NCBI RefSeq assembly: GCF_052425735.1
Contig: NC_135770.1
Coordinates: forward strand, 22,196,001-22,260,000
Length of the DNA: 64,000 nucleotides
Origin: Oculina patagonica
Lineage: Eukaryota
Reading direction: 5' to 3'
Positions within the stretch are counted from its first letter, which is position 1; each line of letters begins with the position of its first letter. This document shows positions 40,473-63,953 of the stretch, one piece after another. Position numbers and translations under genes: made by a program. The notes beneath the pieces were generated by a model. That model had not been told where the DNA came from and did no database searches. It was given only the letters and a program-made list of their open reading frames with translations.

Positions 40473-43400
40473 ATGCGCTCATCTCTGAACGTTCGGTTCA
40501 TTCTGCAGCTATCCTGTGTGATCGCGATCGTAACTGCTGATGGCAACGACACCGCACCCGTGTCGACTCCGGCTCCTTCCAAAAAGAGCGAAAAAGCAAT
40601 TATCGTGAACGCGAATGGAAATTCAGGCAGCATTGAGATCGCCAATGTGAAAGATTCACACAACACCGAGAAAGCCATCAAATCTCTTGAAGCAACTTTG
40701 GAGAAAAACTTTGAAAAGCTTATTCGCGTAGTCAATGGCACATCTCGTGGAAAACCCAACGTTGAATCTGGTATAAAATTGTTTCGCTTGTTTGACTTCT
40801 TTTGTTTGTTTCTTGCTAAACTTTATTGCATTCTATCGATCGTGGACAGTTTGTTCTTTGCGTCGTGTAACGAATCGACGTGTATTGCGTCGTGTAAAAG
40901 CCTATAGAATTGTGCCTCTTGTTTGATTTAATCTCTCTGCTTTGTTTCTCGCTTATAACTTTATGGAATTTAATTTTGGGCACGCTCGTACATTGTGCCA
41001 TGTGATGAAGCATCGTATCTTGCATCGTGGAAAAATGTGTTTCTTGTTTTATTTAGTTTCTTTGTCTTGTTTCTAACTTACTTTATTGCATTTTATCTTT
41101 TGCAGGTTCGTCCTTCGCATCGTGTAAAGACATTTACGCGAACCATAAGTAAGTTGTTAGGTTGCAATATATAAGTATCAAAGGCACCCAATGAGTAAAA
41201 AAGGAAAAAAGAAAAGAACTTAAAAATGATCAACGAAATAACCGTCTATCTTTTGTGCTTTTTTAGTAAGTTGTGACAAAAAATCTAGATTTCATATTTA
41301 TGAACAATCCTTACCTTTGACCACCGCAGTTTTTTCGTTGTCATATTTTTAAAACATCTTTTTAATCACTAAATTTCGATAAATTTCTTGTAGAAAAAGA
41401 CCTTTTGAGAAAGCTCTAAATATAAATTTTCCTTATTTTTTCTTGCACGAGTAACCATCGAAAGGTCTTGGAGAAAGTATTATGCAGATGTGGTTTACTT
41501 TTCATTTATTTCTTCTTATTTTTTTGTAATCAGGTCGCAGGGGAATAAAGCTTACTTACTCCAAATAAACTCTCGGAAGGTCCCTGTTTTTTGTCACATG
41601 ACAATTCATGGCCTTGGAGCATGCGGTGGTGGTGGATGGACGCTGGTCATGAAAATTGACGGCGCTAAGGTAAAACGTGACACTCGAGCTCACTAATCTA
41701 AAATAATGTAATCTAAAACATTGTCAAACATTATGACGTATTCTTGTGGCGTTATGTTTAAGTGACAATATTCGGAGTATCGGCGTTGTGTTTTTCTTTG
41801 AAGGCAGAAGGATTCGATTGAAACTTGTAGTTCCCTTACAAAGAATCAACAAAACCAGCGCTTGTTACCTTGACTATAACTTAAGAAGCGTAAAGTCTTC
41901 CTAAACAATTTTTGTGACAAAATGTTATCCAAGGTAAAATAACGTTCTACGGTTTTTAAGGTCGCGCAGGACCATTGCTCATTAATAAATTCATTAGCCA
42001 AATTTCTTGCCGAGGTGCTATCTTGTAATGCTTTAATTCGCTATATTTTGAACATCGATTCCTCTAAAATTTATCAAGGATATTAGGGGATGATGGAATG
42101 ACATTATGATTGTTCTAATACTGAGAGATCACCGTTGACTGTGATGTTACCAGTCCTTAAATGTTTAACTGCAGATAATACGGTTTTGTGTCCAAGTTTT
42201 CAGCTAGCACAGCGCACCAAATTTAATGATTATACAACCTAGTGATAGATCATAACCTCTTTTGTGCTATGACTAGAACGAAATTTTCGATTTCAAAAAC
42301 TGCTACAAGTTAATGGCTTCCAAGAGAGTAAAAATTTGAAATTTAAACTTTGAAACATGCTATTTTCATTTTGAGAAAGAAATTTAAAAATTCGCTCTAG
42401 TCATAGCACAATAGAGTACACCAAGTTTACGTTCCGAATCAACTCTTGAAATTCTATGTCGGCGGAGAAAACTTGGACACAAAACTGCAGATTTCGAGGC
42501 TTCCGAAGATCTTCCGAGTCAATGTTTACAACAACGTGTGATATATTCAAAGCTGTGAATCTAATTATTCTAATTTGCCATGTTCCAGCGCACGGGGCAC
42601 AAAGCTGAGAACAATTGCTGCTAATTAATTGTACAAAGAACTTTAAAAACAAACAATCTTATGAATATTTCGTTTGTTGTCGGCTTCAGTCGTCGCAGTT
42701 CGTGTATACTCTTTAAATAAATACATACTAATGATTGCAAGGGTCCTGCGCGACCTTAAAGGTGCTGTGTAGTTTCTATGAAATCATCTCAAGATCTCAA
42801 ACAATTAAAGAAAATCCTTTTATTGGGATGGTGTAACTCTCCGTTTGTATTACATATCGCGATTTTTGTTTTTATTCTCGTTAGGCAACTTTTCGTTACG
42901 ATTCCCAACTCTGGAGCAACAAGATCGACTTTAATCTTCCAGGAGGAATGACTGGTTTTGACCACCATGAAGCCAAGTTACCGACCTACTGGAACACACC
43001 TTTTTCAAAGATTTGTCTTGGTATGAAGATCGGCCATCAAATCAACTTCGTTACCATCGACAAGCAGGCCAACTCTTTGTACTCACTGATTGCTGACGGG
43101 CAATACCGCGCCACCTCACTGGGTCGTAGTACGTGGAAGACGCTGATTGGTTCACAGGCCTCCTTACAGAGCCACTGTGACATGGAAGGATTCAATGCAG
43201 GGGTTCATGGTGGCTATTCTAAAGCAAGGATCGGTATCATTAGTAACAACGAAAATGACTGCAAAACAACTAATTCCAGAATCGGCTTTGGTACAGGAGG
43301 GCACCCTGATGGCTCCAATACGTGTGGGAACGCGGCCGCCGGCAGTCCTGATAATGGAGACAAAAGCATCAAAGTCTTGGGATACATCTTGGTCCAGTGA
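40473..43400 (+). CDS. Secreted fibrinogen/intelectin-like (USOMP5-like) protein, 4 exons, ~330 aa
   Basis: Exons 40473-40770 (signal peptide + linker), 41106-41148 (SCKDIY), 41534-41669 ([19 protein letters not shown]), 42885-43400; intact frame. Confidence 0.9.
41960..42755. mobile_element. Kolobok-like MITE (TTAA TSD)
   Basis: ggtcgcgcaggacc / ggtcctgcgcgacc TIRs, TTAA on both sides; empty site in the paralogous intron at ~32455. Confidence 0.85.
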
Positions 43401-45125: not shown

Positions 45126-46223
45126 TGCATGCAAAAAACTTGACTGTTCTCGACCAAGGATCTTCTCAAAAAAATTACAAACCCATCTCTCCTCAACCTT
45201 CGCGCCATATTTATCACTCAGTTTTTATTATGCTTATCGCTCCGCTATCCGGAAAGGAAATACTATTTCCTTTTGAAACAGCTGCTTGTTCAGTGTATTT
45301 CATGACCGGGTCTTATTTACGGGAAAGCGAAATCATGTTCAGAGAATGAGAAATTTAAAGTGGTTTCTAGTGACGTAAAAATAGGCCAAGTTTGATATTT
45401 TAAGAGGCTTGGGCTATATAACAAAAGAAATGATTTATTCATCACTCGAAATTGACTGCTGTATTTCCCTAGGAAGCCAAGTCAGAATTAATTGTAATAT
45501 ATCGAAATTGGCCCAGAAATTTTGCCTTAACTCTAATAGGAATGGTAACCCGCGACAATTGTTAATTTTGCCTTACCCTTTCAATAAGTTGACAATTATT
45601 CCCGGCCCGAGTTTACTGGGTTGGTTTCTGTACTTTAAAGTATTACATATAAAATTCACAACGACTGAGGTTAATACATTCCCTTTTGTCGAGACAAATC
45701 TAAACGTAAACTCAAAATGATACATTTCAATGAAATAGAAACCTAGAATATTGCTCGAAATGAGACACAGAAATAATACATTGAGATTTCACTCAATAAT
45801 TTATAATGACTATGGAATAGTGGAGCTATCCGTTAATTTATGCCCTTCATACAAATAACATGAACATTAAGACATTGCTATAGCTAAATAAATTGAATGA
45901 ATGAATAAATGAACGAATGAGCTAGTGAAGATTTTATTCAGATAGACCGTATATAAATAAAAATTCTCCTTAGCTTTCTTCTTGCCATATCCTGATTTCT
46001 AAATAAAACACCGTTGTTGTGATAAAAATTGGAGAAACCATACAAATGTCAAGTGAACCATGCTAATGCAGAGCTCAATTACAACATCATCGAGTAACAA
46101 ACGAATTCAAGGAATAAGCAGCAACTGACACAGCAGACGTTCAGAATTCGGATCAATATTCTTTTCTGGGAAACAACGACGATAAAATGTGATCGAGTAC
46201 CAATACATAAGTAGTGCACGAAT

Positions 46224-46378
46224 ACTTTTTATCCACTCGATAACTTTTTATCGACTCGATATCTTTTTATCGACTCGATTACTTTTTATCGACTCGATAA
46301 CTTTTTATAATAGATTCGATTAATTTTTATCGTCACGATTACTTTGTTAGATTCGATTAAGTTTTTATCGACTCGATT
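46224..46378 (+). repeat. Left subterminal ~19-20-bp repeats (ttttatcgactcgat..)
   Basis: About 8 copies, mirrored in inverse orientation at 59958-60090. Confidence 0.85.
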
Positions 46379-49351
46379 TTGTCCAGTTCCCAGGTCTTAC
46401 CGGTATTATTGACGTGAAAAAGTTGAGAAAGACTGGTACTTTTGCACCACGCGTACAGTCCTGGGAACGAGGTTAATGAATAAAAAATGTCATGGCGGGG
46501 AAAGTGGAGGAGTAATTTGAAGAAGTTTAACTTCGTGTAGCTTGCAGTATGCAGGAAGGGATTATCTCTCGACCTTTTGAATTGGATTAAGGTAATCTTT
46601 GTTGAACTTTTTTTAAGTATTTAGTGGATATATCATTTTATTGTGTTGTATTCGATGTCCTGTTGAGCTTCAACCAGTGTGTGCTTTAACTTGAATTGAT
46701 GCTAGTTTCATTTCAAAAAAGTTTTGAATTTTTTCGGCTCAGTCTTGTACATGGGTATGATTTTCTTTTTTGTTTTAATGCCTTAAAAAACGTTTACATA
46801 AAAGTATGGAAGTATTATTCCTTATTAAATGTTTGGTTTTGTATTGCATAGTTGCCTGCAGTGCATTCAAGACGTATATATTTTGGATGGCAATTTAGCA
46901 GGTAATTTTTAATCCCAATCACCCCCACCTGTCCCTGCCGTGAGAGGAAGATTATGTCCCTTGTGACCTCTCTTAAAAAAAGTAAGGTCGAATCCCTTTC
47001 AGCCTTGTTTCACCCCAGAGACAAGTCACAAATGTTTTGAAAATATATAATACTTTTAATTAGATAAAGAATGGCTTTTACAGTTAAGCTTACATACTAA
47101 AGAAAACAATCTATTGTGGATATAAAAATATTTTAATGCCACCAACCAGGTGTAAAAAAAACTTTGACTTTTAAGCACTAACTCTTCAAGAGCATCATTA
47201 GATGTAAATGTAATGTGAATGTACATGCTGAGTTTATCCAAATAAGTTGATTTTGAAATTCCTATCAGATATCAAATTTGCAAAACGGTTGTCAGCACGG
47301 ACACTACAGAAAAAATTGTAAGCTGAAAACAATAAATTATTTACTCATCATTGCAAAAAATCAAACAAAGAGTGGCACATGATACATAGCTAGCTCCCTT
47401 CATTTAAGGAAATTATCAGAGACTCCATTTCTAGACTATCCTTTATAATTTTTAAATGCATAAAAGATATGCTTGTTAATGCAAAACTATAACAACGTCC
47501 ATGATAAAAACATGGTACATTTTTTTTTTTAGTTCCACAAATTTTTTTTTTTTGAAAAGTTAAGCATTACTTTTTCAAGTTGCGGTATGTTTCCTATCAA
47601 GCTATCCACTGCCAAATATGCTTGTTAACATAACATTAATTGATATGTTATTTCTGTGCTCTAACAATAGCAACTTGAAATTAAATGATTTTTACTTTAA
47701 GTTTTCTGTCACTTAAATTTATTTTATTTTTTTAATTAGCTGTTCAAAACTCTGGTAAATACAGAAAAAATATGTGACATAGTCCCTTCAACTTTGTATG
47801 CTGTTGCAGTATGCTTACAATGTATGTGCTTGAAAATTATTTTTATTATGGTATAAATAATTAATTGTTGTCTTTGTTCTTTTTAATTTTTTTCCTTTGG
47901 GCTCCTGATCTTTTTTCTCTCTTTCTTTTCCTGTTAATGTCCTCCTTCTCTGCATCTCTTTCTTCTTCTTCTTTCTTTCTTTTATCTTCTTCCTGTTCTA
48001 CATCTTCTTTCTCATCAACTTTATCCTTCTGTTCCTCGTCATTCTTAATTTCTTTGTTGTCTTCCTTCTCATTTCCCTCAGACTTTTCATCTTTCTCTTC
48101 CCATTCTTTGTCTTCTACGTGTTCACTATTGTGTTGTTCTTGATCTGCTACATCCTGCTTGCCCTCTTCTCTTTTTTTCGTTTTTCTTTCTTTCCGTTTC
48201 ATTCTTATTTTCTTTTCTTGGTGTTTCTTTTTTCTTTTTATTTTGAGTTTTCTGTTGGCATCTTTTTCTTCTTCTGTGCTCTTTCTTTTCTTTTTTCCTA
48301 CTCTCTTTACATTTTCATCTATACAGAAAAAAAAAATTGTTTGGCATTACAAACTGATGCAAACATCATAATCACATGTAGCCTGGAATGTCTTTCATAT
48401 CCATAATTTATCTGATAATAGATACCAGGGATGTATAGTTAACAATACATGACTTTGTTTGTTTAAATGGTATACATTTAAACTCTTATGGGGCTAATCA
48501 AACAGGCATCATATTTTTGTTATGTATAAGCAATACACCTTATTCATTAATGGTGGATTGGGTGGAAGTGTTTAGGTAGAGTGCATGAAAGTGAGGCGAG
48601 TGAGTCTTCTGCTTCAAACCAAAACAAGAAAAGTATTGCGATTTGAATACTTAGTATTTGACAATTCTGTTGTGGGGGGTAGGTTGGAAATCGGAATTTC
48701 AAGTGATGAGGATTAACAATAAATTTTTATTAGTTGCAAGTCTTCTTCTTCAAAATACCTTTGCAAAGCCTTCAACATAATGGTTGTTTACACTTTTTGC
48801 ACAGAACAATGAAGCCAATGCAATTGGTAACAATTTTTTAAATCATATTTTATTACCACCAAATAAACTGTTTGTGCCAAATTTTCCTGTCTACAAACAG
48901 ATTCTAATCCTCACTTGAAATGTCATTTACCCCCATTCGAAAGAAAGAAAGGTTTGCCTGTATCTTCACAGAGTTTAAACTAACCTTCTACAGTGGATTC
49001 CAATATCTCTGTTTCATTCTGGGGTAAATTTCCTCTGAAGGATACCTGCAATGAAATATAGGGAAGGGAAGTATGCTGCTTGAATGAGTCACTTGTTTAT
49101 CCATTTTCAAGCAAGTTACTCATTTCTCATTTGTGCAGCATACTCCCCTTCATGCTCTTTATCATGTAGTTTATACAAATCATTAATTTTTTTTTAAATT
49201 TACAATGTGAAAGAGAGCTCTTATGACAATAAACTGGTGTTAAGAGCAATATATCTAACATTCAATGACATATCAAATATCAATATGTTTTACTTTTTGT
49301 TGATCAGCATCTTATTCAATTTTAGTCTGGTCACTTTTAATTCTCAATTAT

Positions 49352-52300
49352 CAGTGGCAGTAATTCCCAAGTATCGGGTCAAAAACCCCTCGTCTCTAAA
49401 GTAGCATTAGTTCCCAAGTCCCGGTCTTAAAAAGCCTCGTCCCTGGAGTAGCATTACTGGCAGTAATTCCCAAGTATCGGGTCTTAAAAAGCCTCATCCC
49501 TGGAGTAGCATTACTGGCACTAATTCCCAAGTACCGGGTCAAAAAAGCCTCGTCCCTGGAGTAGCATTAGTTCCCAATTATCGGGGCTTAAAAAGACTCA
49601 TCCCTAGAGTAGCATTAATGGCAGTAATTCCCAAGTATCGGGCTTAAAAAGCCTCCTCCCTGGAGTAGCATTACTGGCAGTAATTCCCAAGTATCGGGCT
49701 TAAAAAGCCTCGTCCCTGGAGTAGCATTACTGGCAGTAATTCCCAAGTATTGGGCTTAAGAAGCCTCGTCCCTGGAGTAGCATTAGTGGTAGTAATTCCC
49801 AAGTATCTGGCTTAAAAAGCCTCCTCCCTGGAGTAGCATTAGTTCCCAATTATCGGGGCTTAAAAAGACTCATCCCTAGAGTAGCATTAATGGTAGTAAT
49901 TCCCAAGTATCGGGCTTAAAAAGCCTCGTCCCTGGAGTAGCATTACTGGCAGTAATTCCCAAGTATCGGGCTTAAAAAGCCTCGTCCCTGGAGTAGCATT
50001 ACTGGCAGTAATTTCCAAGTATTGGGCTTAAGAAGCGTCGTCCCTGGAGTAGCATTAGTGGTAGTAATTCCCAAGTATCGGGCTTAAAAAGCCTCGTCCC
50101 TGGAGTAGCATTACTGCAGTAATTTCCAAGTATCGGGCTTAAGAAGCCTCGTCCCTGGAGTAGCATTAGTGGTAGTAATTCCCAAGTATCGGGCTTAAGA
50201 AGCCTCGTCCCTGGAGTAGCATTACTGGCAGTAATTTCCAAGTATCGGGCTTAAAAAGCCTCGTCCCTGGAGTAGCATTAGTGGTAGTAATTCCCAAGTA
50301 TCGGGCTTAAGAAGCCTCGTCCCTGGAGTAGCATTAGTGGTAGTAATTTCCAAGTATCGGGCTTAAGAAGCCTCGTCCCTGGAGTAGCATTAGTGGTAGT
50401 AATTTCCAAGTATCGGGCTTAAGAAGCCTCTTCCCTGGAGTAGCATTACTGGCAGTAATTTCCAAGTATCGGGCTTAAGAAGCCTCGCCCCTGGAGTAGC
50501 ATTACTGGCAGTAATTCCCAAGTATCGGGCTTAAAAAGCCTCGTCCCTGGAGTAGCATTAAAAGGCAGTAATTCCCAAGTATCGGGCTTAAAAAGCCGCG
50601 TCCCTGGAGTAGCATTACTGGCAGTAATTCCCAAGTATCGGGCTTAAAAAGCCTCGTCCCTGGAGTAGCATTAGTGGTAGTAATTCCCAAGTATCGGGCT
50701 AAAAAAGCCTCATCCCTGGAGTAGCATTAGTGGTAGTAACTCCCAAGTATCGGGCTTAAAAAGCCTCGTCCCTGGAGTAGCATTAGTGGTAGTAACTCCC
50801 AAGTATCGGGCTTAAAAAACCTCGTCCCTGGAGTAGCATTAGTGGTAGTAATTCCCAAGTATCGGGCTAAAAAAGCCTCATCCCTGGAGTAGCATTAGTG
50901 GTAGTAACTCCCAAGTATTGGGCTTAAAAAGCCTCATCCCTGGAGTAGCATTAGTGGTAGTAATTCCCAAGTATCGGGCTTAAAAAACCTCGTCCCTGGA
51001 GTAGCACTAAAAGGCATTAATTCCCAAGTATCGGGTCTTAAAAAGCCTCATCCCTGGAGTAGCATTAGTGGTAGTAACTCCCAAGTATCGGGCTTAAAAA
51101 ACCTCGTCCCTGGAGTAGCATTAGTGGTAGTAATTCCCAAGTATCGGGCTAAAAAAGCCTCATCCCTGGAGTAGCATTAGTGGTAGTAACTCCCAAGTAT
51201 TGGGCTTAAAAAGCCTCATCCCTGGAGTAGCATTAGTGGTAGTAATTCCCAAGTATCGGGCTTAAAAAACCTCGTCCCTGGAGTAGCACTAAAAGGCATT
51301 AATTCCCAAGTATCGGGTCTTAAAAAGCCTCATCCCTGGAGTAGCATTAGTGGTAGTAATTCCCAAGTATTGTGCTTAAAAAGCCTCGTCCCTGGAGTAG
51401 CATTACTGGCAGTAATTCCCAAGTATTGTGCTTAAAAAGCCTCGTCCCTGGAGTAGCATTACTGGCAGTAATTCCCAAGTATCGGGCTTAAAAAGCCTCG
51501 TCCCTGGAGTAGCATTAGAGGCAGTAATTCCCAAGTATAGGGTCAAAAAAGCCTCATCCCCGGAGTAGCATTAGTGGCAGTAATTCCCAAGTATCGGGTC
51601 AAAAAAGCCTCATCCCTGGGGTAGCATTATTTCCCAAGTACAGGGTCAAAAAAGCCTCATCCCTGGAGTAGCATTAGTGGCAGTAATTCCCAAGTATCGG
51701 GTCAAAAAAGCCTCATCCCTGGGGTAGCATTAGTTCCCAAGTATCGGGTCAAAAAAGCCTTGTCCCTGGAGTAGCATTAGTGGCAGTAATTCCCAAGTAT
51801 CGGGTCAAAAAAAGCCTCATCCCTGGAGTAGCATTAGTTCCCAAGTATCGGGTCAAAAAAGCCTCGTCCCTGGAGTAGCATTACTGGCAGTAATTTCCAA
51901 GTATCGGGCTTAAAAGCCTCGTCCCTGGAGTAGCATTAGTGGTAGTAACTCCCAAGTATCGGGCTTAAAAAGCCTCGTCCCTGGAGTAGCATTAGTGGTA
52001 GTAATTCCCAAGTATCGGGCTTAAAAAGCCTCGTCCCTGGAGTAGCATTAGTGGTAGTAATTCCCAAGTATTGGGCTTAAAAAGCCTCGTCCCTGGAGTA
52101 GCATTAGTGGTAGTAATTCCCAAGTATCGGGCTTAAAAAGCCTCGTCCCTGGAGTAGCATTAGTGGTAGTAATTTCCAAGTATCGGGCTTAAGAAGCCAC
52201 GTCCCTGGAGTAGCATTAAAAGGCAGTAATTTCCAAGTATCGGGCTTAAAAAGCCTCGTCCCTGGAGAAGCATTAAAAGGCAGTAATTCCCAAGTATCGG

Positions 52301-52625
52301 GCTTAAAAAGCCTCGTCCCTGGAGTAGCATTAGTGGTAGTAATTCACAAGTATCGGGCTTAAAAAGCCTCGTCCCTGGAGTAGCATTAGAGACAGTAATT
52401 CCCAAGTATCGGGCTTAAAAAGCCGCGTCCCTGGAGTAGCATTACTGGCAGTAATTCCCAAGTATTGGGTCAAAAAAGCCTCATCCTTGGAGTAGCATTG
52501 TTTCCTAAGTATAGGGTCAAAAAAGCCTCATCCCTGGAGTAGCATTACTGGGACTAATTCCCAAGTATCGGTTCAAAAAAGCCTCATCCCTGGAGTTGCA
52601 TTTAGTTCCCAAGTATTGGGGCTTA
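49352..52625. repeat. 56-bp tandem satellite, ~3.3 kb, roughly 60 units
   Basis: Unit gtaattcccaagtatcgggcttaaaaagcctcgtccctggagtagcatta(ctggca/gtggta); shorter ~47-bp variants near the ends. Confidence 0.97.
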
Positions 52626-55600
52626 AATAGTTGAACTGATTGCCTTATGGATTGAAGATCTTATTTAAATGACATGGAATAAAATTTTCCCTACCTCATG
52701 GTTTAAAATTCTCTTGCATTCTGCCTCTGTCTAGCAAATGTTAGAAATGTGGATATAAGTATTTTATATCTGCATTGATATTCTAGTTAATGTATATGCC
52801 CAAGACCTGCCCCTCCCACAAGCTGATTTTTTTTTTCAAGGTTATCCTGTGTTCAAATCCCCAAATTTAACACAGCCAACTGGTCTGCCTCCTGCCAGTT
52901 GCTTTTTTTTTTACCTTCAATAGTGGTTCAACTTTCCTGGGTTGTATTTCTTTTTTTTTGGTTAATTTTTTTGTTCTTCCATTACATCACTTGCATCAAT
53001 TACATCAGGTATTCTGTCATAAATAATAATACATTGTATGTAACATGCATACTATGTTCTGTAACTTACATTCTTTTGACATTGCTAGCCTTTGTATCTA
53101 CTTACTCGTTCATTTGCATCCAACAACTCACGACCGTTTACTGCATCCCTGTGAAAAACCACTTGACTCTGTCGTTGCAGGGTAAAGTGATGGGGCATGT
53201 CTTCCAAGCCCCCTGCCCAGTCATATACTTCCTGTTATAGAGAACCTGCAGAGTCAGGTAGTACAAACAATTGGTTGGGGCACACAAATCTTAGATACTT
53301 GCTGTTGTTAATATTATAATTATTATTATTTGAATTGCAAACAACTGATATGTTCTAATACGTATCAAGGACATTTAATGATTTTTTTTCAAAGTAGATT
53401 GTTATCTACTTTGAAGTAACAAACCCTTAACATACCTCTTCCTCCTTTTCCTTTTCCCTTTCGGGGTCATTTATGTTTCCTGGTGGCTTAAATAAAATAA
53501 AACAAAGAATTAAGTACAGAAGTCTGTGTCTGAACAAAGTGGCACCATACGGCCAGGACCTATCCTGGATTATCAACCTGGATGGGATGCTTAGTCTACT
53601 CCAGGGTTACCACCCAGCAGGTTCACCAAATTCACTCCTGTCAGCTTACTATGCACTCCGGTTAGCCTAACTATACACTCCGGTTAGCCTGTTTACGGTT
53701 AGCTTTAAATAATGGTAAAGGTAACGCAATATATTCTGCATTCTGCAAATGTCAGACAATGTGTATTTTCCAAGGACACAATGCAGCACACTGGTTAGGC
53801 CTCAAACTTTGGTTGTTTGTCACAGAATTAGCACACTGACCACCCCTCCACACTGATACAAGTGTTATATCAATTATGTATACCGGTAAATCTGAACACC
53901 AGAAAGAATCAAGAAAAGAACATTGCTTATTTGTAGGCATTGCTTACATTCCGATTATTTGTGTTTAACTTCACTACAGAAAAGTTAATGTTTGTCTAAA
54001 TTGCCTGGTAGCATCTGTTGCCTGAATACTCACCATGTCCAATGACTGGTTATTTATCTCACACTCGGCAAACTGTCCATCTTGTTCCTGCTTCTCTGCT
54101 CGCCATCTTGCAAGTTTTTCTCTAAACAGGAAAATTACACCAAATTTTTTGTTTAATTATGAGTGAAACTGAGTGTTGTTAATAATTATGTGGAGTATTA
54201 ATTTGTTGAATACTGTTAATTATTGTATCAAATTGAGAAAACAATCTATGTACCTTTCTATTACAAGCGATTCAATGAGAAAGGTTGCTCGCTCGCATAT
54301 GCTGGTCGTTGAGCGGGAAAGCCAATCATCATCCTCAATATCTGATGCTGAAATTGATTAAGAAATAAACAACAGGGTTACATATGAAGCCGTTATTGTT
54401 TCAAAACTGAATAGAATTATTCTTCAGCAAACAAAATTATGTCTCCTTCAATCCTTTCAATGAAGGTTAGATTTCGTCCAGCTGAGGGAGTTAAAAATAT
54501 TAACTGGTCCACATCATTTGCCTGATTTCCATACAACTTGAGTGCTGTTTATTTAAAAAAAAAAACATAGTGAAATTAGTAGGAGGATAAAAGGCAGTAT
54601 AACAAACAGAACCTACTGTGGAACTGTTGAAAGGACTTTTTTCAAGTTTGATGAAAACCTACAATGTTTAAGTCTAACCAACCTTTTTGGCCATCTTTAG
54701 ACGTTGTTTTAGCCGTCCAAAAGAGCCAACCTTCTTTGCATTGCTCCAGTACCTTCTGAAAAACCCTTGATAAATTAATAACATCTGAGTTAGTAAAACA
54801 CAACCCTAAGGTCATCCAAGTTTACAAACAGGACATACCTAGGTTAATGTCCAATAACAGTATGAATACAGTCCAGAGTAAAGTGGTATGGTTACTTGAA
54901 TTAAGTGAAAAAGGTAAATTTGTGACATGAAAAATTTGGACAAATCATGACACTGATTTGTATATTGAAATAATTGGATGAGAAAAATGCTGAGGACAGC
55001 CAAAATTTGACGAGGCCGTAGGCTGAGTCCAATTTTGCTGTCCGAGGAATTTTTCGAGTTCAAGTATTTCCAAATTGGTCGACAAGCATGTAGTCCTGTT
55101 ACTTATTAATTATATAGCATCTTTAAATAAGTGAGCCTGGCAAATTTCTGACCCCAAATAGGAAAAAAAATACAAAATTTTAAAAAAGTGAAAGTGTCCA
55201 ATTTATTTTAAAGAGTCCAATTTATTTTAAATTTGGACAGTTGTAAAAAATTTATAAAAAATCTATCTGTTGGCAATATAGGATTTACTGACAGCTTAAT
55301 ATAATTAGAAATTAAACGAACATAGCAAATGCCATGATAACACTGTAAAATGTACATGCATACCTCAATGTAGCTTCATTTAATTTTCCATGATGCAAAC
55401 ATGCACTGGGGCAAAGTAAAAGAACCATAACTGGTTTTCTCTCCTCACGTGCCTGCCAGCATAGCTATTTGTAAATCAAGAACAAGGAAAAGTGAATAAT
55501 GGTTTTAGTTAAACCTCAAACAGTGTTACTTAAGATTTCTCCTGACCTCTTCAAAAGTGTGAGTAAGAAATGGAGGAACCGACATCTGCAAATTAATACA

Positions 55601-55811
55601 GGATAACTGTATAGTAGATTCACATCGGCACACTTCATTGACCCGACACTCTCTGCTGGATACCCCTGCAATCAAAACATTACAATGTATATTATTTTGA
55701 AAGGTGACACAAAACAATTATTGAAATGGCATAGTAAGCCAACTCCAGGGGAAGTAAGATAAAGGGGCCTTCCACATGCTTCGATCATTGTGCCTTATCT
55801 AGTTATTGTAA

Positions 55812-56851
55812 CACAGGGCACAGAGGAGTCAAGTTTGTCCGCAATTCCAAATCTCTACCGTGCAAAACGACCTTCAAAAGCTTTTCAAAGCGATCGTGTG
55901 AGCCGTACGTGATACAACGCCGTCATGCGATACTTGTTTGCAGATCGTCTGGTGATATCGTATTCTGACAATGGTCGCCTGGGGAGAATAAATCGTCGCC
56001 CTTCGGGCGACGATTTTTTTTCCGCAAGCGAAGCTTTCCGACGAGGCACGAAGTGTCGAGAAGAAAAAGAGACAAGGGACGAAACATTATACCACGTGAT
56101 CCGCTCGATGTCACCCGAAGCATACTGGTGGCGGAAACGGAAGTCGTGTGTAGATCCATGCTGTGACAGCTGAAATCAACCGTTACTAATCCGAAATTCA
56201 AAACAACAACTCATCTTTCGACCGGCGGTAAGATTCAAAATATGAATAGTGCTCTCCAGGAAAAGCGAAATTTACCATACGAGGAACAACGCAATCCGAA
56301 GAAATTGAATGTGGAAAACAATGTTTTCTCTTCAAAGCGGTAAGTTAATTGTGAAACACATTACGGTATTGCAACATCACGTCTCGTGACGCATTTCCGC
56401 CACCAGTATTCTCCGGTCCACATTGTACGAAACGAATTTTTAACTGCCTAAAACTCATCCCTCGAAATACAGCTTAAATGACTTGTTTGAAAATTTTCTT
56501 ACAGCGTATGGGAAGACAATCCTAGTCTTAAACCACATGTTAAAAATGAGATCGATTCGTTTGATTTTTAGGGAGTAACGAGGGATCGGAATTTCGCCTC
56601 AAATCGCTTTCGTCCCTTGCTCTTTTTCTTACTGCTGGTCTCTCTGGTAACGCCCACAAACATTGATGTGTGCGGATGTCGCATGAGGATATGAATACGA
56701 TATCACCAGACCAGACAATCTGTAAACAAGTATCGCATGACAGCGTTGTATCACGTACGGCTCACACGATCACTTTGAAAAGCTTTTGAAGGTCGTTTTG
56801 CACGGTAGAGATTTGGAATTGCGGACAAACTTGACTCCTCTGTGCCCTGTG
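55812..56851. mobile_element. P-element-type MITE nested in the large transposon
   Basis: Long (~170-bp) TIRs starting CACAGGG; 7-bp TSD attgtaa. Confidence 0.85.
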
Positions 56852-59800
56852 ATTGTAATTGTTAGGTTTTTAGTTGTATTACTATAATAATGAATATTTC
56901 TTTTCAAGCATTTAGGTAATATTCCAGGTAACAAGTGTATGTACTCTTACATTACAATGTACATGTCTTTCAACTGTTTTTTGAAAAAAAAAATCTCTTG
57001 TGAATTATTTTATTAGGGGTATGCTATTGTTGATATGTTTATTACCTCCTAAGCCATGCGGAGACATGTCCATTGTAAATGTCCCAACTGTAGAAGAAAG
57101 ATTTCAATCACAGAAAAATTACCTGCTCTTAACTGAATTAAAATACTTAACAATTATCCTGCGAAATCGCGCGGAATATCGCCTGATACTTAGCCGACAA
57201 GGCCGTAGGCCGAGTTGGGTAAAATCAGACGATATTCCGCAAGATTGAGCAGGATAATTGATTTATTATTCAACAAATTGTCAACTAAAACACATTTTGG
57301 ACATAGAAAAACTGTAATTATGCAGAGCTTTACAAGATTTCGGACGAATCAACGCAACCTACGAATATCGCAGGATATCTGTTATGTATGGATGACAGAT
57401 ATCCTTAACATTTTGACCATATATGGGCAGCGCGCGCATCTGTTGAATAATAAATGTAAATATAAGACATTCTTACCATTTATACCATCTCCATGAAAAG
57501 GTTCACCACTTTTCCCTGTGTGTGAAACAGAAACTTAATTATTGAGATTACGAAGGCTTAACTGTGTTAAATCTAATGTATGAGTGAAAACAAAGCCAAT
57601 AACTACAATCAATTAAAACATTAATTTTAAGATCTTTAGAATTTTACCTGAGGTAGTACAGGTAGATGATGGTTGCCTCACACGTCTGATGAACGGTCTT
57701 CGTATTGGCACTTAAATAGAGAATTTTTTTTTCAAAATCACAACTAGCAGCTACAAGGTGAATTATTTGTGTTATGTACATGTACAATAATTTGGTAAAA
57801 AATCAAACTTAAAATAACTCCTGAGTATATAATAAGTTAACCTGCTGCCTAGCTAAATGGAAGGTGGGTGCCCGGGATATCCAGGGGCTTCCACTGTGGC
57901 CTGCCAGCCCCTAGACAGAATACAGCTCCCATGGCTGGCAAATCCCCGCAACCCAGCCATGAGCCCCCATTCCAGGCACCCGTCAACACTTTTTGAATCA
58001 GTGGAAGGAGAAGAAATAGGGGAGGGTGGGGTGGGGGAACGCTGAGCAAAGCCGGTAGGAAAGTGCTAAAAAAAACACGAAGAAGACCGCTACGACGACC
58101 GCTAGTGCTCAAAGCAAACACGCTGCTGAAAAACGAAGCTGCAACAAACCATGTGAGCCTGCACTTAACCAGGTGACCGCTGGCCAGAGGCGCCCGCTAG
58201 CTCATGGCAGTTAACTACTTTGTTAAATGCCCCAGAATAACTTCGTTAAAAGTCATTTAACTAAATGAAAAAACTTATTATACAAATGATTTAATACACC
58301 AAATCAAAGACTTCTTAACGTTTTAAAATAATTACAATTGCTGCCTAATTGCATAGTGCATTATAAAATGACTTTGTCTGCACCAGTGCATATTAATAAA
58401 TGCAACATTTAAGTGATATTATAAAGTCTTCTAACATTTTAATTTAAGTCTTAAATTATTCACATAGATACAGAGTGGATCTTACATGTTGTACCTTGCA
58501 CAGTGTTAACTATCTCTATATCATCATCAATTGTGAAAGGGCTCTGTAATAGATCAGCATCTGTGGGGTTTCAGAAAATAATGCATTATTTTTCCCCTGC
58601 TAGTAACATAATTATGATTATACAGTTTAATCCTGCTTTTCAAGCCTACAATGTAAAAATACACCATTAAAAGGCTGGAATAAATAATGTGACATCATAC
58701 ATTTATCATGAATATATAAAATGACTTGTGATGGTCCACAGCTCAAAAAAAATTATTCAAGAAACAGCTTGAGGTAATTTAAATTTAAATGTATTGGTAA
58801 CCCTGTTTACACAGATTCAGGAACCCCTGTTTGCAAAAATGGTAAACAACATCTTGGAAAAAGTTTTCCAAATTTTATACTAAAAAAATAGACAAAGTTT
58901 TTGCATTGTAGTGACTTTAGAAGTATTGAGAATTTGGGGTTAAATGATAGTTAATATTACAAATTATAAGATACTATCCAAAGGAAAACAAAATATGGCC
59001 AAGGAAATCAGGTACCGGTATTTTCAGAAACTGAGGGTTGCTGAACAATTAAATTATGTACTTACCATTTGTGTCATCCACACTCATGCTTGTGTCCAAT
59101 GGCACTGAAACTGTTTGTTTTTTTTAAAAAAAAAAATAACATTATAAGAGTAGACAGGAGTTAATCCCTGTTTTTTTTTTTTTTTTTTCAGGGCAATGTG
59201 TGGGTCCAGGAAATCTGTACATGTCCCCATAAGAAGGGGATGGAAATTCCCTGGGGTAGAAGGGATTCAAAGGTGAAGAACTAGGAAGAAACATATAAAG
59301 CTTTATAACAATTGAAACTTCCCGAGGGGTTGGGGTGCCTTTGTAAAAAGCGTTTCTTGGCGCACAATGATTGTCTACTCAAACTCCTAAATATCCTTTA
59401 CAATTCACTTCTGAGCAATGCTCATTGCAGGAATACATTAGTCAAAAATATTATTATCCTTTTGGGTTATATTAACTCACGGCTTAAATATATAAAGAAA
59501 AAATTAATGGATATTCTGCTTAGTACATATCGACCACAAGTCACCTTCACTTTGGCAAATAGTTCCGCGACTGTAGTTAGTAGCGATTCAATTCTCTTTT
59601 TACTAATCTCTGTTGTTTGTGTTCCATGTACTTAAATACAGATTAATATAATAAGTAGTAAACGCTATGACTCAAAACTAAATTTTAGATTCATGGACTC
59701 AATATAATGAATAATAATCCCTGTGTTGTTTCACCTGTTATTTACACATTGAAACTTTACTACACAAGAAACCTTAAGTAAAGTGTCTTAGTATTATTTT

Positions 59801-59957
59801 GTTTTAAAGCAATACACTTACTTCTTCTAGGTGTTGAATCAACCTGGGCAGGCGTGCTGGCCAAAGGGGCAAGAACTGATACTGCAGTAAATGATGTTGA
59901 ATTGGTGGTCTGGGCAGACGTGGCAGCAGAGAGAACATTGGCTGGCTGAGTAGAAGA

Positions 59958-60090
59958 AATCGAGTCGATCAAAAGAAACCGAGTCGATAAAAAGAAATCG
60001 AGTCGATCAAAAGTAATCGAGTCGATAAAAAGAAATCGAGTCGATCAAAAGTATTCGAGCTGGATGTAAAAGAAATCGAGCTGGATGAAA
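59958..60090 (-). repeat. Right subterminal repeats of the large transposon
   Basis: atcgagtcgat(c/a)aaaag repeats. Confidence 0.85.
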
Positions 60091-61315
60091 TTGCATCGTG
60101 CACTAATTATGTTTTCGTAGTCGACCACATTTTATCGTCGTTGTTTCCCAGAAAAGAATATTGATCCCAGAATTCTCGGGGGTAAAGAAAACAACTGCGT
60201 GTACGATCCCTTTTTTATTGTTTCGTAGATCAAGTCTTAACGTTTTTTTTTTTAACGTCCAAAATCCCTCTTCATGGAAAATTGCCCCCCTTTGTTCAAA
60301 CCAACGGCGAATTTCGGACCAGAAGAAACGTCTCTAAGTTGTTCAATTCACCCTTCACTGAGACGAGCACGAATAGCCGAAACGTCGTGCAAATTCTTTG
60401 TCGCAGTCCTTCGTAAACGTTTCCTTTGAAATTTCTACCAAATGCAATCATGTACGAGGATTTTTGGCCGTAAATAATGGTAGAAATGATATTACTTTGG
60501 GTTATGTCTGCAGTTTTAGCAATTTCTACTAAACATAGGCTTTAGGTATTTATGTTATTTTATTTCTAATGTCAAAATTTAATTGAAGCCGGGGAAAGTA
60601 ATATAATAAATTAAGCGAGGATGGCTACTGCATATTGAGATGGATTAAAAACGTGACAAAATGGAGCCATGTTTTCTCAAAAAGCCCCGTCATTGACAAA
60701 GCCCGTTTAAAGACCCGCGGGAATATCACCAGCCGATGAATTGTTATTTGAATAGCAACTGCCAGTCTTCGGGCTAAGTGGCGACGGCTTATTGACACAG
60801 GCGACATTTTAATGGTTAAAATATTCTTGAAAAGGAAGAGTAATTACCTTTTATTGAGTCTCTCTATATGTTATGCCACTCATGCAAACGATCTGAAGGA
60901 CAATTGTCTTTTACATTAATATTTCCATATTGACTACTTTTCTCGCACGAAGTTTAGTAGTCAGTTTCTGCACTTAAAAAAAACACACCAAGAGAGGATA
61001 AAAATGATAATATGTACCGTTGAGACATATCTATATCTAAATTAATTTAAACTACGTATCAATAAAAAAAGAATCTCAATGGAATATTGCTTGAAATAAG
61101 ATCGCGTGTCCTTAGGTATTAGATTCCACGTGACATAACTTTTTTAGGGTTAGTTGATTTACAGACTAATGAGCTTCACTGGAGTGTTTACTTTGTTAAT
61201 GGACTACAAATAAATATCATATAAACAAGAAGATATAATCACGACACGTTAAAATTGTTGTTATAATGTTTAATCTTCAATAGTGAGTGATTCATAAAGA
61301 ACACTGCTCAACAAG

Positions 61316-63953
61316 ATGCGCTCGTCTCTTCGGTTTATTCTGTGGCTATCCTGTGTGATCGCGATCGTAACTGCTGATGGTAACAACACTGCACCCGTGT
61401 CGACTCCGCTTCCCGCCAAAAAGGGCGACAACACAATTATCGTCAACGTGAATCAAAATACAGGCAACACTGAGAAGGCCATCAAATCCCTTGAAGCAAC
61501 CTTACAGAAAAAATTTCATCAACTTATACAGGCAGTAGTGAACGCCACATCTCGTGAGAATCATAATGTCGAATCTGGTAAGATGGCTTTATCGATGATT
61601 ATATACTAATTGGTTTATTCAGTTCATTTCCCTGTTTTGTTTACCCTTAACTTTACTACATTATATCTTTTGCAGGTTCGTCTTTTGCGTCATGCAAAGA
61701 AATTTACGTGAATCAGAAGTAAGTAGCCATGATAAAAGTGGTACGGGGAAAAAAGAGTTCTCTGCTAGCATTGTCTCCTAGCTCTGTTAGCAATTAAAGG
61801 AGACGTGTTGTGTAAGAAAAGTTTATGCAATTTGGTTCTTTAGGATTTTCATTTGAAGAGCAAATCTTGCTCTTCACCAGTTATCTCGTTATACAACATC
61901 ACCGTTTCAGCGTAATAGTCGAAAAACAGCATTTACCATCAGTCGCAGTAATAGTATACCACGCAAAGTTTTTAAGTAATGCGGATTCGGATTTGAGCAA
62001 AAATAGTGGCGGATTTACCGATTTGGCCAAAAAATAACACGGATCGTCGGATTTGCGTACCTCTATTAACCCCCCCCCCCCCCCCCCTCTATCTCTCTCT
62101 CGTTGACCGCATGTAAACTATTCTTTCCGGTTAGATAATCAAACAACCGAGAAAAAAATAGTGTTTTATAAATGTAAATCGAAACAGAACACGTAGCCTT
62201 GGCTTTGTTGCATTTTCCATTTGTTTTCGATAAATTTCAGTTAAGCGTTTAAAGACTGAGAAAGTTAAATTTATATATTCGATGAAGTTACAATACCCCA
62301 GATAAATGATCTCATCAAGTCTTCAGTTTTGAGTGCGGAGTTAAAGTTAAGTCTACACTCAATCAGTTTTTCTGTCCTTTAAGTGACCCTGAGTAGAAAA
62401 CGTTCAGCTTGTTTCCGTAAAATTTACCCCGTTTTGCAGAAATTTGTCTTCTATGTATTACCATTTTTAAAGGAGGGGAAGACAAGGCATATCGGAGTGG
62501 GGGAGTATTTTTTTTTTTCTACGCATTAACATGTTTTGTTTTGTAATAAGGTCTCAAGGAAACAAAGCTTACCTACTACAAATGGACTCTGGGAAGGTCC
62601 CTGTTTTCTGTCTCATGACGAGTCTTGGAGCATGCGGTGGTGGTGGATGGACGCTGGTCATGAAAATCGATGGTGCTAAAGTAAGGCCCGGTTCAGATGC
62701 CGTACTATTCATGAGCCGAACTCAATTCGAATTTGGACCGACCCAAATTGACAAAAGTACACCTCTTGATTCAGATGCCGTACTTTTTGGCCGTTCCGAG
62801 ACCGTTCCTAATACAGTTCCATACAGTTCCGTTAAAACCAGTCTTTGAGATAAACTGCTTGCAAAATACATTATAATAGTTTATGAATTAGGATCGGCAC
62901 TTGAAAAGTACGGCGTCTGAATCAAAGCCGTTCCAAAGGCGTTCCACAGGCGAAATTCTCGGCCAAGCCAGGCGGGAGGATCGGGTGAGCCGTTCCAAAT
63001 TGAAATAGCCGTTATAATTTGATTCAGACGGCGATCTTTTCATGTACTTAATTCAAGGAATTAGGTTCGGCTCATGAAAAGATCGGCGTCTGAACCGGGC
63101 CTAAATAAAATATAGAGAGCCCAATATAGAATTATGAAACAGTTGTTTTTACCCCGAGTGTACATTTGAAATTAATTGTAAATTGATCTCTGCAAAAAGA
63201 AGAAACAAAATTAGTATGTGTCTCCTCGCAATATCCAATATAGTCGACCCGAAGAATCGCGTTAGTGAATTGACTCATTTCCCGCTGTCAAGCTAGGAAA
63301 TTAATCAAGCAGCTCCACGTATTCTTGTTTTAGATGACGTACTGTATAACGTACTGTATGTAACGGTTATGTAGTACGTGTGCAGGACTTGATTTTCATG
63401 TCACACTTTTTATCTTTATTCCCAATAGACAACATTTCGTTACGATTCAAATCTCTGGAGCAACAAGGTCGACTTCAATCTTCCAGGAGGAAAGACTGGC
63501 TTTGACCATCACGAGACCAAGTTACCGACCTACTGGAACACACCCTTCTCCAAGATCTGTCTTGGCATGAAGATCGGCCAACAGATCAACTTCATTGTCA
63601 TCAACAAGCATGCCAACTCTCTGTACTCACTGATCGCTGACGGGCAATACCGCGCCATCTCACTGGGTCGTAACAAGTGGAAGACGCTGATTGGTTCACA
63701 GGCATCCTTGCAGACCAACTGTAACAAGGAAGGGTTCAATGCAATTAGTGGTAATAGTGCTGATTCTAAAGCAAGAATCGGTTTTCTAGGCAACCAACAA
63801 AATGACTGCGGCAGCTCTGAGTCCAGAATCGGGTTTGGTACGGGAGGGCATCCTGATGACTCCAACACGTGTGGAAACGCAGCAAGTTCCGGGCACTCGC
63901 CAGATAATGGAGGGAAGAACATCAAAGCCATGGGATACATTTTGGTTCAGTGA
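61316..63953 (+). CDS. Secreted fibrinogen/intelectin-like (USOMP5-like) protein, 4 exons, ~319 aa
   Basis: Exons 61316-61577, 61676-61718, 62551-62680, 63429-63953; intact frame and signal peptide. Confidence 0.9.
62685..63101. mobile_element. PIF/Harbinger MITE inserted in a splice donor
   Basis: TIRs ggcccggttcaga / tctgaaccgggcc; TAA TSD (62682-62684, 63102-63104). Confidence 0.88.

Follow-up and report, generated by a model that had tools for sequence, protein, structure and literature searches.

Known Merlin transposons are a few kilobases long and hold a single gene, and to our knowledge none has been described with subterminal repeat arrays or a second gene, which would make a two-gene unit of more than 23 kb unprecedented. 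An 8-bp target-site duplication (TSD) is not unique to Merlin in the Repbase scheme. The hAT elements combine it with short terminal inverted repeats (TIRs) starting YARNG and with a hAT dimerisation domain, and the ends of both hAT and P elements start with CA or TA; Mutator-like elements (MULEs) usually have TSDs of 9-11 bp, long TIRs, and a MULE transposase in the autonomous partner. In Zisupton elements the transposase is of the KDZ type and contains SWIM and Ulp-type domains. Gene cargo between long arms that bear subterminal repeats is most familiar from MULEs and CACTA elements, and what Pack-type elements carry is usually short pieces of genes, in many cases of more than one. Some subgroups of the bacterial IS1595 family, as listed in ISfinder, carry passenger genes. 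The hallmarks of Merlin are a TSD of 8 or 9 bp, TIRs of 24-462 bp, and a conserved terminal 5'-GG (PMC8101967, citing Feschotte 2004); the Zisupton TSD is 8 bp, and Kyakuja, of the KDZ group, ends in CA..TG (PMC12730594).

We analysed a 64,000-nucleotide stretch of the Oculina patagonica genome (CM126647.1:22196001-22260000; the window), in which a 14-kb element at 46150-60167 is set between two paralogues of skeletal-organic-matrix-protein-5 (SOMP5). It is a non-autonomous class II (cut-and-paste, TIR) transposon copy, and the core of an earlier note on this DNA, that a non-autonomous, cargo-carrying 14-kb TIR element was mobilised in trans, is supported. Its ends and surroundings are as follows.

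46142-46149, no strand: left TSD, CAGAATTC, by direct reading, identical to 60168-60175
60168-60175, no strand: right TSD, CAGAATTC, by direct reading
46150-46191, plus strand: left TIR, 42 bp, beginning 5'-GG, exact reverse complement of 60126-60167
60126-60167, minus strand: right TIR, 42 bp, exact match to the left TIR
46224-46377, plus strand: left subterminal array, 19-bp unit, 7.9 copies (tandem repeat finder and motif scans)
59954-60080, minus strand: right subterminal array, 19-bp unit, 6.6 copies, in inverted orientation (tandem repeat finder and motif scans)
38079-38086, no strand: paralogous empty site with a single CAGAATCC, upstream of the second SOMP5 paralogue (40473-43400)
61316-63953, plus strand: downstream neighbour, a SOMP5 paralogue of 319 aa, annotated publicly (L001 5135-7772 corresponds to window 63953-61316)

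The 42-bp TIR, GGATCAATATTCTTTTCTGGGAAACAACGACGATAAAATGTG, occurs exactly twice in the window with no mismatches (none expected from 100 shuffles); no third copy is present there even when 12 mismatches are allowed, and the public collections scanned contain none. The TIR starts with GGATC, and the inverted arms reach 86 nt at 87% identity. The 19-bp unit has a nearly palindromic 11-bp core, ATCGA(C/G)TCGAT (ATCGACTCGAT in the left array), which within the window is confined to the two arrays, and we presume these repeats to be putative transposase-binding sites. When the flanks are joined with one copy of the TSD, they align unbroken across the junction to the paralogous block. The features claimed in the earlier note are confirmed: the perfect TIRs beginning GG and the perfect 8-bp TSD both read exactly, the mirrored subterminal repeats are present as arrays in opposite orientation at both ends, the flanks rejoin precisely at the empty site, and the distance from the element to the ATG at 61316, put at ~1.15 kb, is 1,149 bp.

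The element's own parts are two arms of ~230 bp, and the remaining 13.5 kb is a passenger segment. Only one other genomic copy of this cargo is known, on a different chromosome (CM126638.1:37518424-37561749; L008), and comparison with this sister copy gives the following interior features.

46380-47863, minus strand: 3' UTR of the passenger gene and the DNA beyond it, running straight into the left arm, colinear with spliced transcript L006 and with L008
47864-59087, minus strand: passenger gene copy LOC144636473 / ACROYT_G041162, multi-exon, 5'-truncated, and degenerate (exon search and cluster names; exon map by tblastn)
49353-52630, no strand: 56-bp satellite, ~55 copies, within a passenger-gene intron (tandem repeat finder)
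53237-53239, no strand: point at which 760 bp present in the sister copy are deleted, with the loss of two exons (blastn segments break, L008 28599 to 29360)
54444-54445, minus strand: lost splice donor, GT to GA, of exon ALKLYGNQ...FIERIE at 54446-54548 (window ATTGAAG/GAGACA, L008 ATTGAAG/GTGACA)
55813-56851, no strand: nested TIR element with 142-bp TIRs starting CACAGGGCACAG and 7-bp TSD ATTGTAA, an internally deleted version of an 11.9-kb element
59796-59956, minus strand: Thr/Ser-rich exon fragment of the passenger gene, its 5' side cut off (parent exon longer in L008 and L005)
59954-59956, no strand: deletion junction where the right subterminal array meets the Thr/Ser-rich exon, showing 3-bp microhomology CTT (three-way comparison of window, repeat unit, and L008)

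The interior holds no open reading frame longer than 165 aa, and no Pfam family reaches its curated cut-off across 60 stop-to-stop pieces of the element. DDE_Tnp_IS1595 is absent from these pieces, and tblastn with coral Merlin exons gave no match in the window, as expected for a non-autonomous copy and in agreement with the earlier reading of an interior with a satellite, a nested element, and no recognisable transposase. Beside the left arm, window 47519-46564 is colinear with positions 2693-3986 of L006, a spliced transcript from another coral, and the 3' UTR region is colinear with L008 35294-33588 at 96.7%. The passenger gene is modelled in the window as P0121 (291 aa) and P0125 (439 aa), with an annotated ATG at 59087-59085, and its decay is plain. 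The annotated models skip the exon at 54446-54548, which is used in the parent protein P0131 and in transcript P0128; the two deleted exons encode the first half of a ubiquitin-like domain, and residues 468-544 of P0131, which map to L008 28686-29219, have no counterpart in the window. The parent Thr/Ser-rich exon runs 360 bp further upstream in L008 (10702-11199) and is likewise extended in L005 (4447-4910); homology to L008 ends at window 59956, or L008 11066. The window copy is without a transposase, the 5' end of the passenger gene, two exons, a splice donor, and 10.8 kb of the nested element.

The interior aligns with L008 in five colinear blocks of 96.3-98.7% identity (98.5% in aligned bases, about 97% with gaps included), the copies differing by 157 substitutions (1.5%) and four large indels. 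The earlier note called the insertion real and recent; it is real, and it is recent only in a relative sense, given 1.5% substitutions and several large deletions against the sister. The exact 42-bp TIR occurs once in L008, at 35253-35294, with TIR and subterminal array together spanning 35061-35294, and this left arm is joined to the 3' end of a multi-exon gene, LOC144648415, at the same junction as in the window. Because the outer end of the arm points away from LOC144648415, the gene lies on the interior side. Also interior to the shared left arm, head-to-head upstream of LOC144648415, is a 268-aa transposase gene (L008 2747-6474) with PF12762, DDE_Tnp_IS1595; its C-terminal exon scores E = 2.4e-15 by hmmscan, at 57 bits against a cut-off of 27, and judged by eye the motifs KCDESKF, TDDWGAY, and VESCWN in its exons are likely the catalytic DDE positions. 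The sister copy's right arm, which would show as the TIR and the 19-bp array with CAAATGTA after them, is absent from the 2.7 kb examined past the stop codon of the transposase gene (L008 1-2747). The nested element is complete in L008 (14149-26033), where it occupies the corresponding site, has the same TSD, and contains a zf-AD/DUF6589 gene of 1094 aa; L008 also has ~32 copies of the 56-bp satellite at 30001-31788. The nested element and satellite, both present in the sister copy, therefore came with the cargo and were not gained after insertion; the comparison indicates that the satellite then changed copy number, and the 10.8-kb internal deletion of the nested element is found in the window copy only.

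Probably, the element arose by internal deletion from a giant two-gene transposon of the Merlin superfamily and was mobilised in trans, rather than being a classical Pack-type capture or a member of Zisupton/KDZ. The autonomous parent would have exceeded 23 kb without the nested element and 35 kb with it, and would have been laid out as right arm, Merlin/IS1595-type DDE transposase gene (minus), ubiquitin-like-domain gene (plus), and left arm. An internal deletion, probably in gap repair after excision, would have started just inside the right arm and ended within the Thr/Ser-rich exon, removing the transposase and the second gene's 5' end; the right-arm junction, with its 3-bp microhomology and its place inside an exon, looks as a deletion breakpoint should. 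The arms would then have been bound by a Merlin transposase acting in trans, a mode of mobilisation implied by the TSD, which would have excised the derivative and integrated it by 8-bp staggered cuts between the two SOMP5 paralogues. We infer that the L008 transposase gene belongs to the same element as the arms, and that the window copy was mobilised by this transposase or one related to it. In cnidarians, Merlin-type genes are scarce, with 5-23 protein hits per species (PMC8101967), and chance adjacency is therefore unlikely. Like Ds from Ac, dSpm, and KP from P, the element keeps both ends, has lost the transposase, and has a short microhomology at its deletion junction; unlike them, it retains 13.5 kb of a non-transposase gene, and looks more like a cargo carrier than a short MITE-like remnant.

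The transposase and passenger gene form a colinear head-to-head pair in another coral (L005), and a third also has the pair (L003/L009/L010). For the transposase, comparison of O. patagonica with L005 gives a dN/dS of 0.16, which indicates purifying selection. In Acropora muricata, homologues of the passenger gene lie on seven different contigs with 99-100% protein identity, as expected of a gene travelling with a mobile element. The passenger gene is transcribed and spliced in other corals (L006, L007), with no such arms beside it in the DNA examined. In the third coral (ERZ25067879), the gene pair has no TIR pair within 10 kb in either direction. The two loci there with the transposase ORF are 99% identical over 16 kb; because this identity takes in the flanks, they resemble haplotigs or a recent segmental duplication more than transposed copies, and the pair could here be a domesticated, immobile neighbourhood.

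An unlikely alternative is Pack-type capture or transduction, in which the TIR family is unrelated to the Merlin gene and an element that had inserted downstream of a host gene, LOC144648415, carried neighbouring host DNA along, either by reading through to a second end or as a composite 'macrotransposon' of two copies, so that the 14-kb unit is a host-gene transduplicate. The element is indeed a non-autonomous TIR element with a TSD and a genic interior, that interior copies a gene found more complete on another chromosome, and its right-arm junction cuts an exon; the armless, expressed homologues in other corals point the same way, and the Merlin/second-gene pair might reflect conserved synteny of a domesticated gene. 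However, capture by template switching predicts an armless parent, an ordinary host locus, and L008 shares the left-arm junction, the inner side of the arm facing the gene; if a separate small element had landed there, its proximal TIR should lie between gene and arm, where there is none. The length of the TSD and the GG ends point, each independently of the cargo, to the superfamily of the neighbouring transposase, and an ordinary host gene would not usually be multi-copy, as this one is in Acropora. Plant Pack-MULE and Pack-TYPE elements (PMC8903248, PMC5861414) share the non-autonomous TIR structure, TSD, and intron-bearing genic interior annotated as a gene, but their fragments derive from host genes outside any element, whereas here the parent has an arm. 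The segment also differs from those of plant Pack-types in being a single 13.5-kb piece in an animal host. The earlier note had allowed either a Pack-type or an internally deleted element; a deleted giant fits better, given the left arm, shared junction, and interior transposase of L008, and Pack-type fits less well.

Rather less likely still is an origin in another superfamily with 8-bp TSDs (Mutator-like with G-rich termini, hAT, P, Novosib, or Zisupton/KDZ), with the autonomous partner elsewhere in the genome. Such TSDs are not restricted to Merlin, with Zisupton also at 8 bp (PMC12730594), and the element contains no transposase; nevertheless, the element yielded no MULE, hAT, THAP, KDZ, SWIM, or Ulp domain, nor was one called in the sister locus. 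With the nested element set aside, the IS1595-type gene is the sole transposase interior to the shared arm; the zf-AD/DUF6589 gene of 1094 aa is part of that nested element, which is bounded by separate TIRs and a 7-bp TSD. For Mutator-like elements the long arms fit, the 8-bp TSD is atypical, and neither the element nor L008 has a MULE domain. The hAT elements agree in TSD length; the GG..CC termini do not match theirs, and the scans showed no hAT domain. Zisupton/KDZ shares the 8-bp TSD, large size, and a ubiquitin-family-related domain somewhere in the element; there, however, a protease is fused to the transposase, whereas here the beta-grasp domain is in a separate gene. No KDZ, SWIM, or Ulp family is found in the ORF pieces of the element, in proteins P0121, P0125, P0129, and P0130, or in the genes called in L008, which leaves Zisupton/KDZ unsupported.

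Merlin is favoured over Zisupton/KDZ, the two candidates of the earlier note, because of the GG termini, the 8-bp TSD, and the DDE_Tnp_IS1595 gene in the sister copy. The TSD and the 42-bp TIRs starting GGATC are within the Merlin ranges; the window copy itself does not encode DDE_Tnp_IS1595, and it shares its left end with a locus that does, where the left TIR and array are identical and the PF12762 gene is interior, within sequence reaching 2.7 kb beyond that gene. Unlike known Merlin elements, the window copy is 14 kb without a transposase, and the inferred parent is larger than 23 kb, with a second multi-exon gene and 19-bp arrays. An assembly chimera, or a segmental duplication ending in repeats by chance without transposition, is extremely improbable: assemblers can misjoin sequences as similar as this interior and its counterpart on another chromosome (about 97% identity with gaps counted), but the boundaries are exact, with 42-bp inverted ends, an 8-bp direct repeat, and flanks that rejoin in the paralogous block, and 157 substitutions and four large indels against the sister show that this is not a duplicated read set.

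The C-terminal domain of the parent passenger protein is confidently predicted to adopt a beta-grasp (SUMO/ubiquitin-like) fold. In an AlphaFold2 model of P0131:240-600, residues ~270-345 have pLDDT values of 80-88, and the top Foldseek PDB matches are SUMO1 and ubiquitin (TM-score 0.72-0.77 on target, rmsd 2.1-2.5 A); the result applies to the parent copy, the window copy having lost the first half of the domain. The parent protein matched no Pfam family at E up to 1-10, including the curated ubiquitin, UBX, and UAS families, and the passenger protein had no PDB sequence match. The earlier description of a ubiquitin-pathway-like gene therefore stands at the level of the predicted fold, and not as Pfam family membership. 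A UAS-like region is also suggested by sequence pattern alone, where the model has pLDDT 40-50.

We tentatively propose, as a possibility that falls somewhat short of probable, that scleractinian corals harbour an undescribed giant two-gene Merlin lineage in which an IS1595-type transposase is stably paired head-to-head with a ubiquitin-like (UBX/SUMO-fold) gene, a pairing maintained in three or more coral lineages and, in Acropora muricata, recently amplified. If so, the second protein would be a transposon accessory factor, and we speculate, by analogy with ClpX in phage Mu, that it may act as an adaptor recruiting a p97/VCP-type segregase to disassemble the transposition complex. The window element would then be the first recognised deletion derivative of this giant Merlin lineage.

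The element at window positions 46150-60167 ends exactly where an earlier note had placed it: a 42-mer terminal inverted repeat (TIR), GGATCAATATTCTTTTCTGGGAAACAACGACGATAAAATGTG, lies at 46150-46191 on the plus strand and at 60126-60167 on the minus strand with 0 mismatches, and the 8-bp target site duplication (TSD) CAGAATTC is present at both ends (46142-46149 and 60168-60175). The window holds no further copies of the TIR, even at 12 mismatches (none are expected by chance), and the inverted arms are complementary over 86 nt at 87%. Inside each end is an array of a 19-bp unit (46224-46377, 7.9 copies; 59954-60080, 6.6 copies), the two in opposite orientation, as the description of mirrored subterminal repeats had it; the 11-bp core of the unit, ATCGA(C/G)TCGAT, is nearly palindromic and within the window occurs in the two arms only. 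Diverged tandem blocks are present in the window, and when the flanks of the element are joined with one TSD copy they align without interruption across the junction to the neighboring, paralogous block, where a single CAGAATCC at 38079-38086 marks the empty site that the earlier note had proposed. The insertion is real and precise. Whole-collection scans of metagenome and genome contigs with a TIR 25-mer and two successive subterminal units gave no match.

The "family gene" next to the element is a paralogue of skeletal organic matrix protein 5 (SOMP5); the element lies between SOMP5 paralogues at 40473-43400 and 61316-63953, and the measured distance to the ATG of the latter, at 61316, is 1,149 bp, in agreement with the previous figure of ~1.15 kb upstream. 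L001, a locus reached through a protein that the element encodes, matches window 37861-64000 with 100% identity across 26,140 bp, which puts the window at CM126647.1:22196001-22260000 of the O. patagonica assembly GCA_052425735.1. The window lies within a large tandem cluster of SOMP5 genes, with many O. patagonica paralogues on the same 38-Mb chromosome, and holds five copies of the large SOMP5 C-terminal exon, in both orientations and with 77-87% pairwise DNA identity.

SOMP5 C-terminal exon copies in the window
1800-2339, minus strand
16907-17455, minus strand
32566-33106, plus strand
42850-43400, plus strand
63394-63953, plus strand

Elsewhere in the window is a tandem duplicate pair (18595-19767 and 20355-21547, 86.8% DNA identity) of intronless ARF-like small GTPase genes, the first of which has an odd 90-aa N-terminal extension.

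ARF-like genes in the window (Pfam Arf, E = 1e-59)
18908-19756, minus strand
20685-21269, minus strand

A 478-aa ORF at 34360-35796 (minus strand) abuts and runs into an N run (35797-35958) and has no Pfam match; judging from the sequence alone, our guess is the C-terminal portion of a mobile element protein of retroelement or recombinase type. Direct and inverted copies of a 240-bp repeat lie at 22243-22961 and 38892-39128 (92-98% identity), and the repeat also matches 10178-10444 of L005, a contig from another coral; to judge from this match, it is a small interspersed repeat common to different coral species.

There is no long ORF in the element, and Pfam searches with 60 stop-to-stop pieces found no family above cut-off, consistent with the earlier statement that it lacks a recognizable transposase. 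A DENN match (Pfam, E = 0.0024) was rejected because the real exon at that place uses another reading frame (VPIRRPFIRRVRQ), and an APC1 near-match from a PDB sequence search with a single exon (E = 2.9) was rejected because it is absent with the other exons. Two plant-miRNA-like Rfam matches far below the gathering score were taken as chance, one of them a hairpin with 37-nt arms at 57151-57260 (31 bits; gathering score 95). The minus strand shows exons bounded by splice sites, and one of these, searched against 1.84 billion representatives, matched a 291-aa protein at 93% identity with all mismatches falling at the splice edges; the protein is XP_078351813.1, annotated as "uncharacterized protein LOC144636473 [Oculina patagonica]", and GenBank models this locus as KAL9953707.1 (439 aa). 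The exons of the gene extend from 59087 to 47864 on the minus strand, and a 56-bp satellite (49353-52630) lies inside an intron of this passenger gene.

A search with the longer, 439-aa model identified LOC144648415 (XP_078364107.1, 758 aa; KAL9977554.1, 522 aa), a second such gene in O. patagonica, located on a different chromosome. The entire interior of the window element aligns colinearly with this sister locus (L008, CM126638.1:37518424-37561749) in five blocks, with 157 substitutions in 10,545 aligned bases (1.5%).

Colinear blocks between the window element and the sister locus L008
Block 1: window 46150-47845, L008 35294-33588, 96.7% identity
Block 2: window 47846-49352, L008 33341-31840, 98.7% identity
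Block 3: window 52631-53239, L008 29972-29360, 96.3% identity
Block 4: window 53237-56360, L008 28599-25490, 97.5% identity
Block 5: window 56348-59956, L008 14655-11066, 97.3% identity

The exact 42-bp TIR occurs once in L008 (35253-35294), with a subterminal array at 35061-35213 and a flanking 8 bp, CAAATGTA, at 35295-35302. The array meets the gene's 3′ end at exactly the junction seen in the window, and the TIR has its outer end facing away from the gene, which therefore sits interior to the left arm there too. At the other side, homology ends at window 59956 and L008 11066, inside a Thr/Ser-rich exon that in L008 has 360 bp more upstream and is preceded by further exons; the right subterminal array stands in the window where the homology ends, with 3-bp microhomology (CTT, 59954-59956). 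A right arm of the sister copy was not found within the 2.7 kb examined beyond the L008 transposase gene. Just inside the 42-bp TIR, the left arm of the window copy (46192-46235) has ~6 differences within 30 bp, at which the right arm (60082-60125) and L008 (35209-35252) agree with each other; this local excess of changes in the left arm hints that L008 itself is not the direct donor.

Compared with L008, the window passenger copy is without its 5′ exons and without 760 bp holding two exons, and the GT donor of the exon ALKLYGNQ...FIERIE, which both the sister gene and a transcript from another coral include, is now GA (54445-54444). The two public gene models read across the deletion in different frames, hence their differing 3′ ends. 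The satellite (~55 copies in the window versus ~32 in L008) and the nested element, a 1-kb remnant at 55813-56851 of an 11.9-kb element, are indeed inside as previously noted, and both were inherited with the cargo rather than gained after insertion, since both are also in L008. The 11.9-kb nested element there sits at the same site with the same 7-bp TSD and holds a 1094-aa zf-AD/DUF6589 gene; its family differs from that of the 14-kb element, and a GenBank model fuses flanking exons with a DEAD/Helicase_C gene.

Nested transposon family (142-bp TIRs starting CACAGGGCACAG, 7-bp TSD)
L008 14149-26033: full-length, 11.9 kb
Window 55813-56851: internal-deletion derivative

L008 also carries a 268-aa gene (2747-6474, minus strand), head-to-head with the passenger gene and belonging to Pfam PF12762 DDE_Tnp_IS1595; hmmscan of its C-terminal exon gave E = 2.4e-15 and 57 bits against a cut-off of 27, and its exons contain by eye the motifs KCDESKF, TDDWGAY, and VESCWN, the likely positions of the catalytic DDE residues. 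The same gene pair, in the same relative orientation, is colinear in the 12-kb contig L005, in which 1-4934 corresponds to L008 2885-11226 and the remainder runs on through the passenger gene; the transposase exons of O. patagonica and L005 have dN/dS = 0.16 at dS = 0.32. Cnidarian Merlin-type proteins are rare, with 5-23 hits per species (PMC8101967), which makes a chance neighbor improbable. The pair is also found in a third, more distant coral (ENA ERZ25067879; loci L003, L009, and L010), in which no TIRs of the Merlin copy in L003 are recognizable, no TIR pair lies within 10 kb around the gene pair, and L009 and L010 are 99% identical throughout without an element boundary; the pair may be immobile or domesticated there. 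Between the two genes in L008 is a 127-aa ORF (7617-8000) that is absent from the compact orthologous L005 interval; it is probably a later insertion in O. patagonica, and our guess by eye is a non-LTR retrotransposon tail.

The passenger gene is spliced and expressed in other corals, as seen in transcript contigs L006 and L007, and its 3′ UTR in these ends ~190 bp from the start of the left array in the window. No version of the protein has a Pfam match, and an AlphaFold2 model of sister protein residues 240-600 is poor overall (mean pLDDT 50), with one confident domain (residues ~270-345, pLDDT 80-88) whose best structural matches are SUMO1 and ubiquitin (TM-score 0.72-0.77 on target, rmsd 2.1-2.5 Å). 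The gene is thus multi-exon as proposed earlier, and the model supports the description "ubiquitin-pathway-like" at the level of fold only, not of Pfam family membership. Our impression is that a putative UAS/thioredoxin-like domain lies upstream of a coiled coil, before the ubiquitin-like region. Acropora muricata homologues are on seven different contigs with 99-100% protein identity (P0130, P0132-P0136, P0138, P0139, P0141; loci XP_067040375, XP_067029046/XP_067054624, XP_067046699, XP_067029509, XP_067016264, XP_067030931, and XP_067022747), which is the pattern of a gene moving with a mobile element and suggests very recent amplification. In the distant coral, ctg73823 (691547-723984; L003/L004) has two copies of the ubiquitin-like-domain gene in a large palindrome, arranged tail-to-tail with a shared satellite (~118-bp spacing) between them. 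A third copy, on ctg73310, appears to represent the other haplotype.

We favor, with moderate confidence, the view that the window element is an internally deleted, trans-mobilized derivative of a giant Merlin transposon. One large Merlin-superfamily transposon would comprise the arms together with the genes for the IS1595-type transposase and the ubiquitin-like-domain protein, and internal deletion of this unit followed by mobilization in trans would have given rise to the window element; an account with one transposon is the simplest. Capture of the gene by an unrelated TIR family seems to us unlikely. It may have occurred in a composite or read-through form, but the left junction contradicts template-switch (Pack-type) capture, since the left arm is present at the parent locus L008, and we dropped it as a reading of the exon-cutting right-arm junction for the same reason. 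Of the earlier wording "Pack-type or internally deleted," the second half is therefore the one favored, and the element falls outside the strict sense of the Pack-type class. Membership of another superfamily is quite improbable: nothing in the element or sister locus supports Zisupton/KDZ, hAT, or P, so that of the earlier pair of candidates, Merlin and Zisupton/KDZ, Merlin is the one favored. Merlin elements have TIRs of 24-462 bp with terminal 5′-GG and TSDs of 8 or 9 bp (PMC8101967), and the window element has both features, while it encodes no transposase, as is the case for any non-autonomous copy. The exact ends, TSD, and empty site leave hardly any room for an artefact.

As an internally deleted Merlin derivative, the element would work like the classical deletion derivatives Ds, dSpm, and KP. 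What is unusual is its size, its retained multi-exon gene, and its palindromic subterminal repeat arrays, along with an association between a Merlin transposase and a second gene that appears to be of long standing. Animal DNA transposons carrying whole multi-exon genes are rarely documented, and a Merlin element this large, or one with an accessory gene, is not known to us. Despite its annotation as protein-coding, LOC144636473 is the decayed copy of a transposon passenger gene. With the 14-kb insertion in place, a SOMP5 paralogue is cut off from its distal upstream DNA, and its regulation may differ from that of its neighbors as a result; the insertion also provides a presence/absence marker in an invasive coral. 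Should the two-gene unit prove true, it would be a new architecture for a superfamily thought to be minimal, and would supply a candidate accessory protein of a eukaryotic transposon, linked to the ubiquitin/p97 system, that can be tested.
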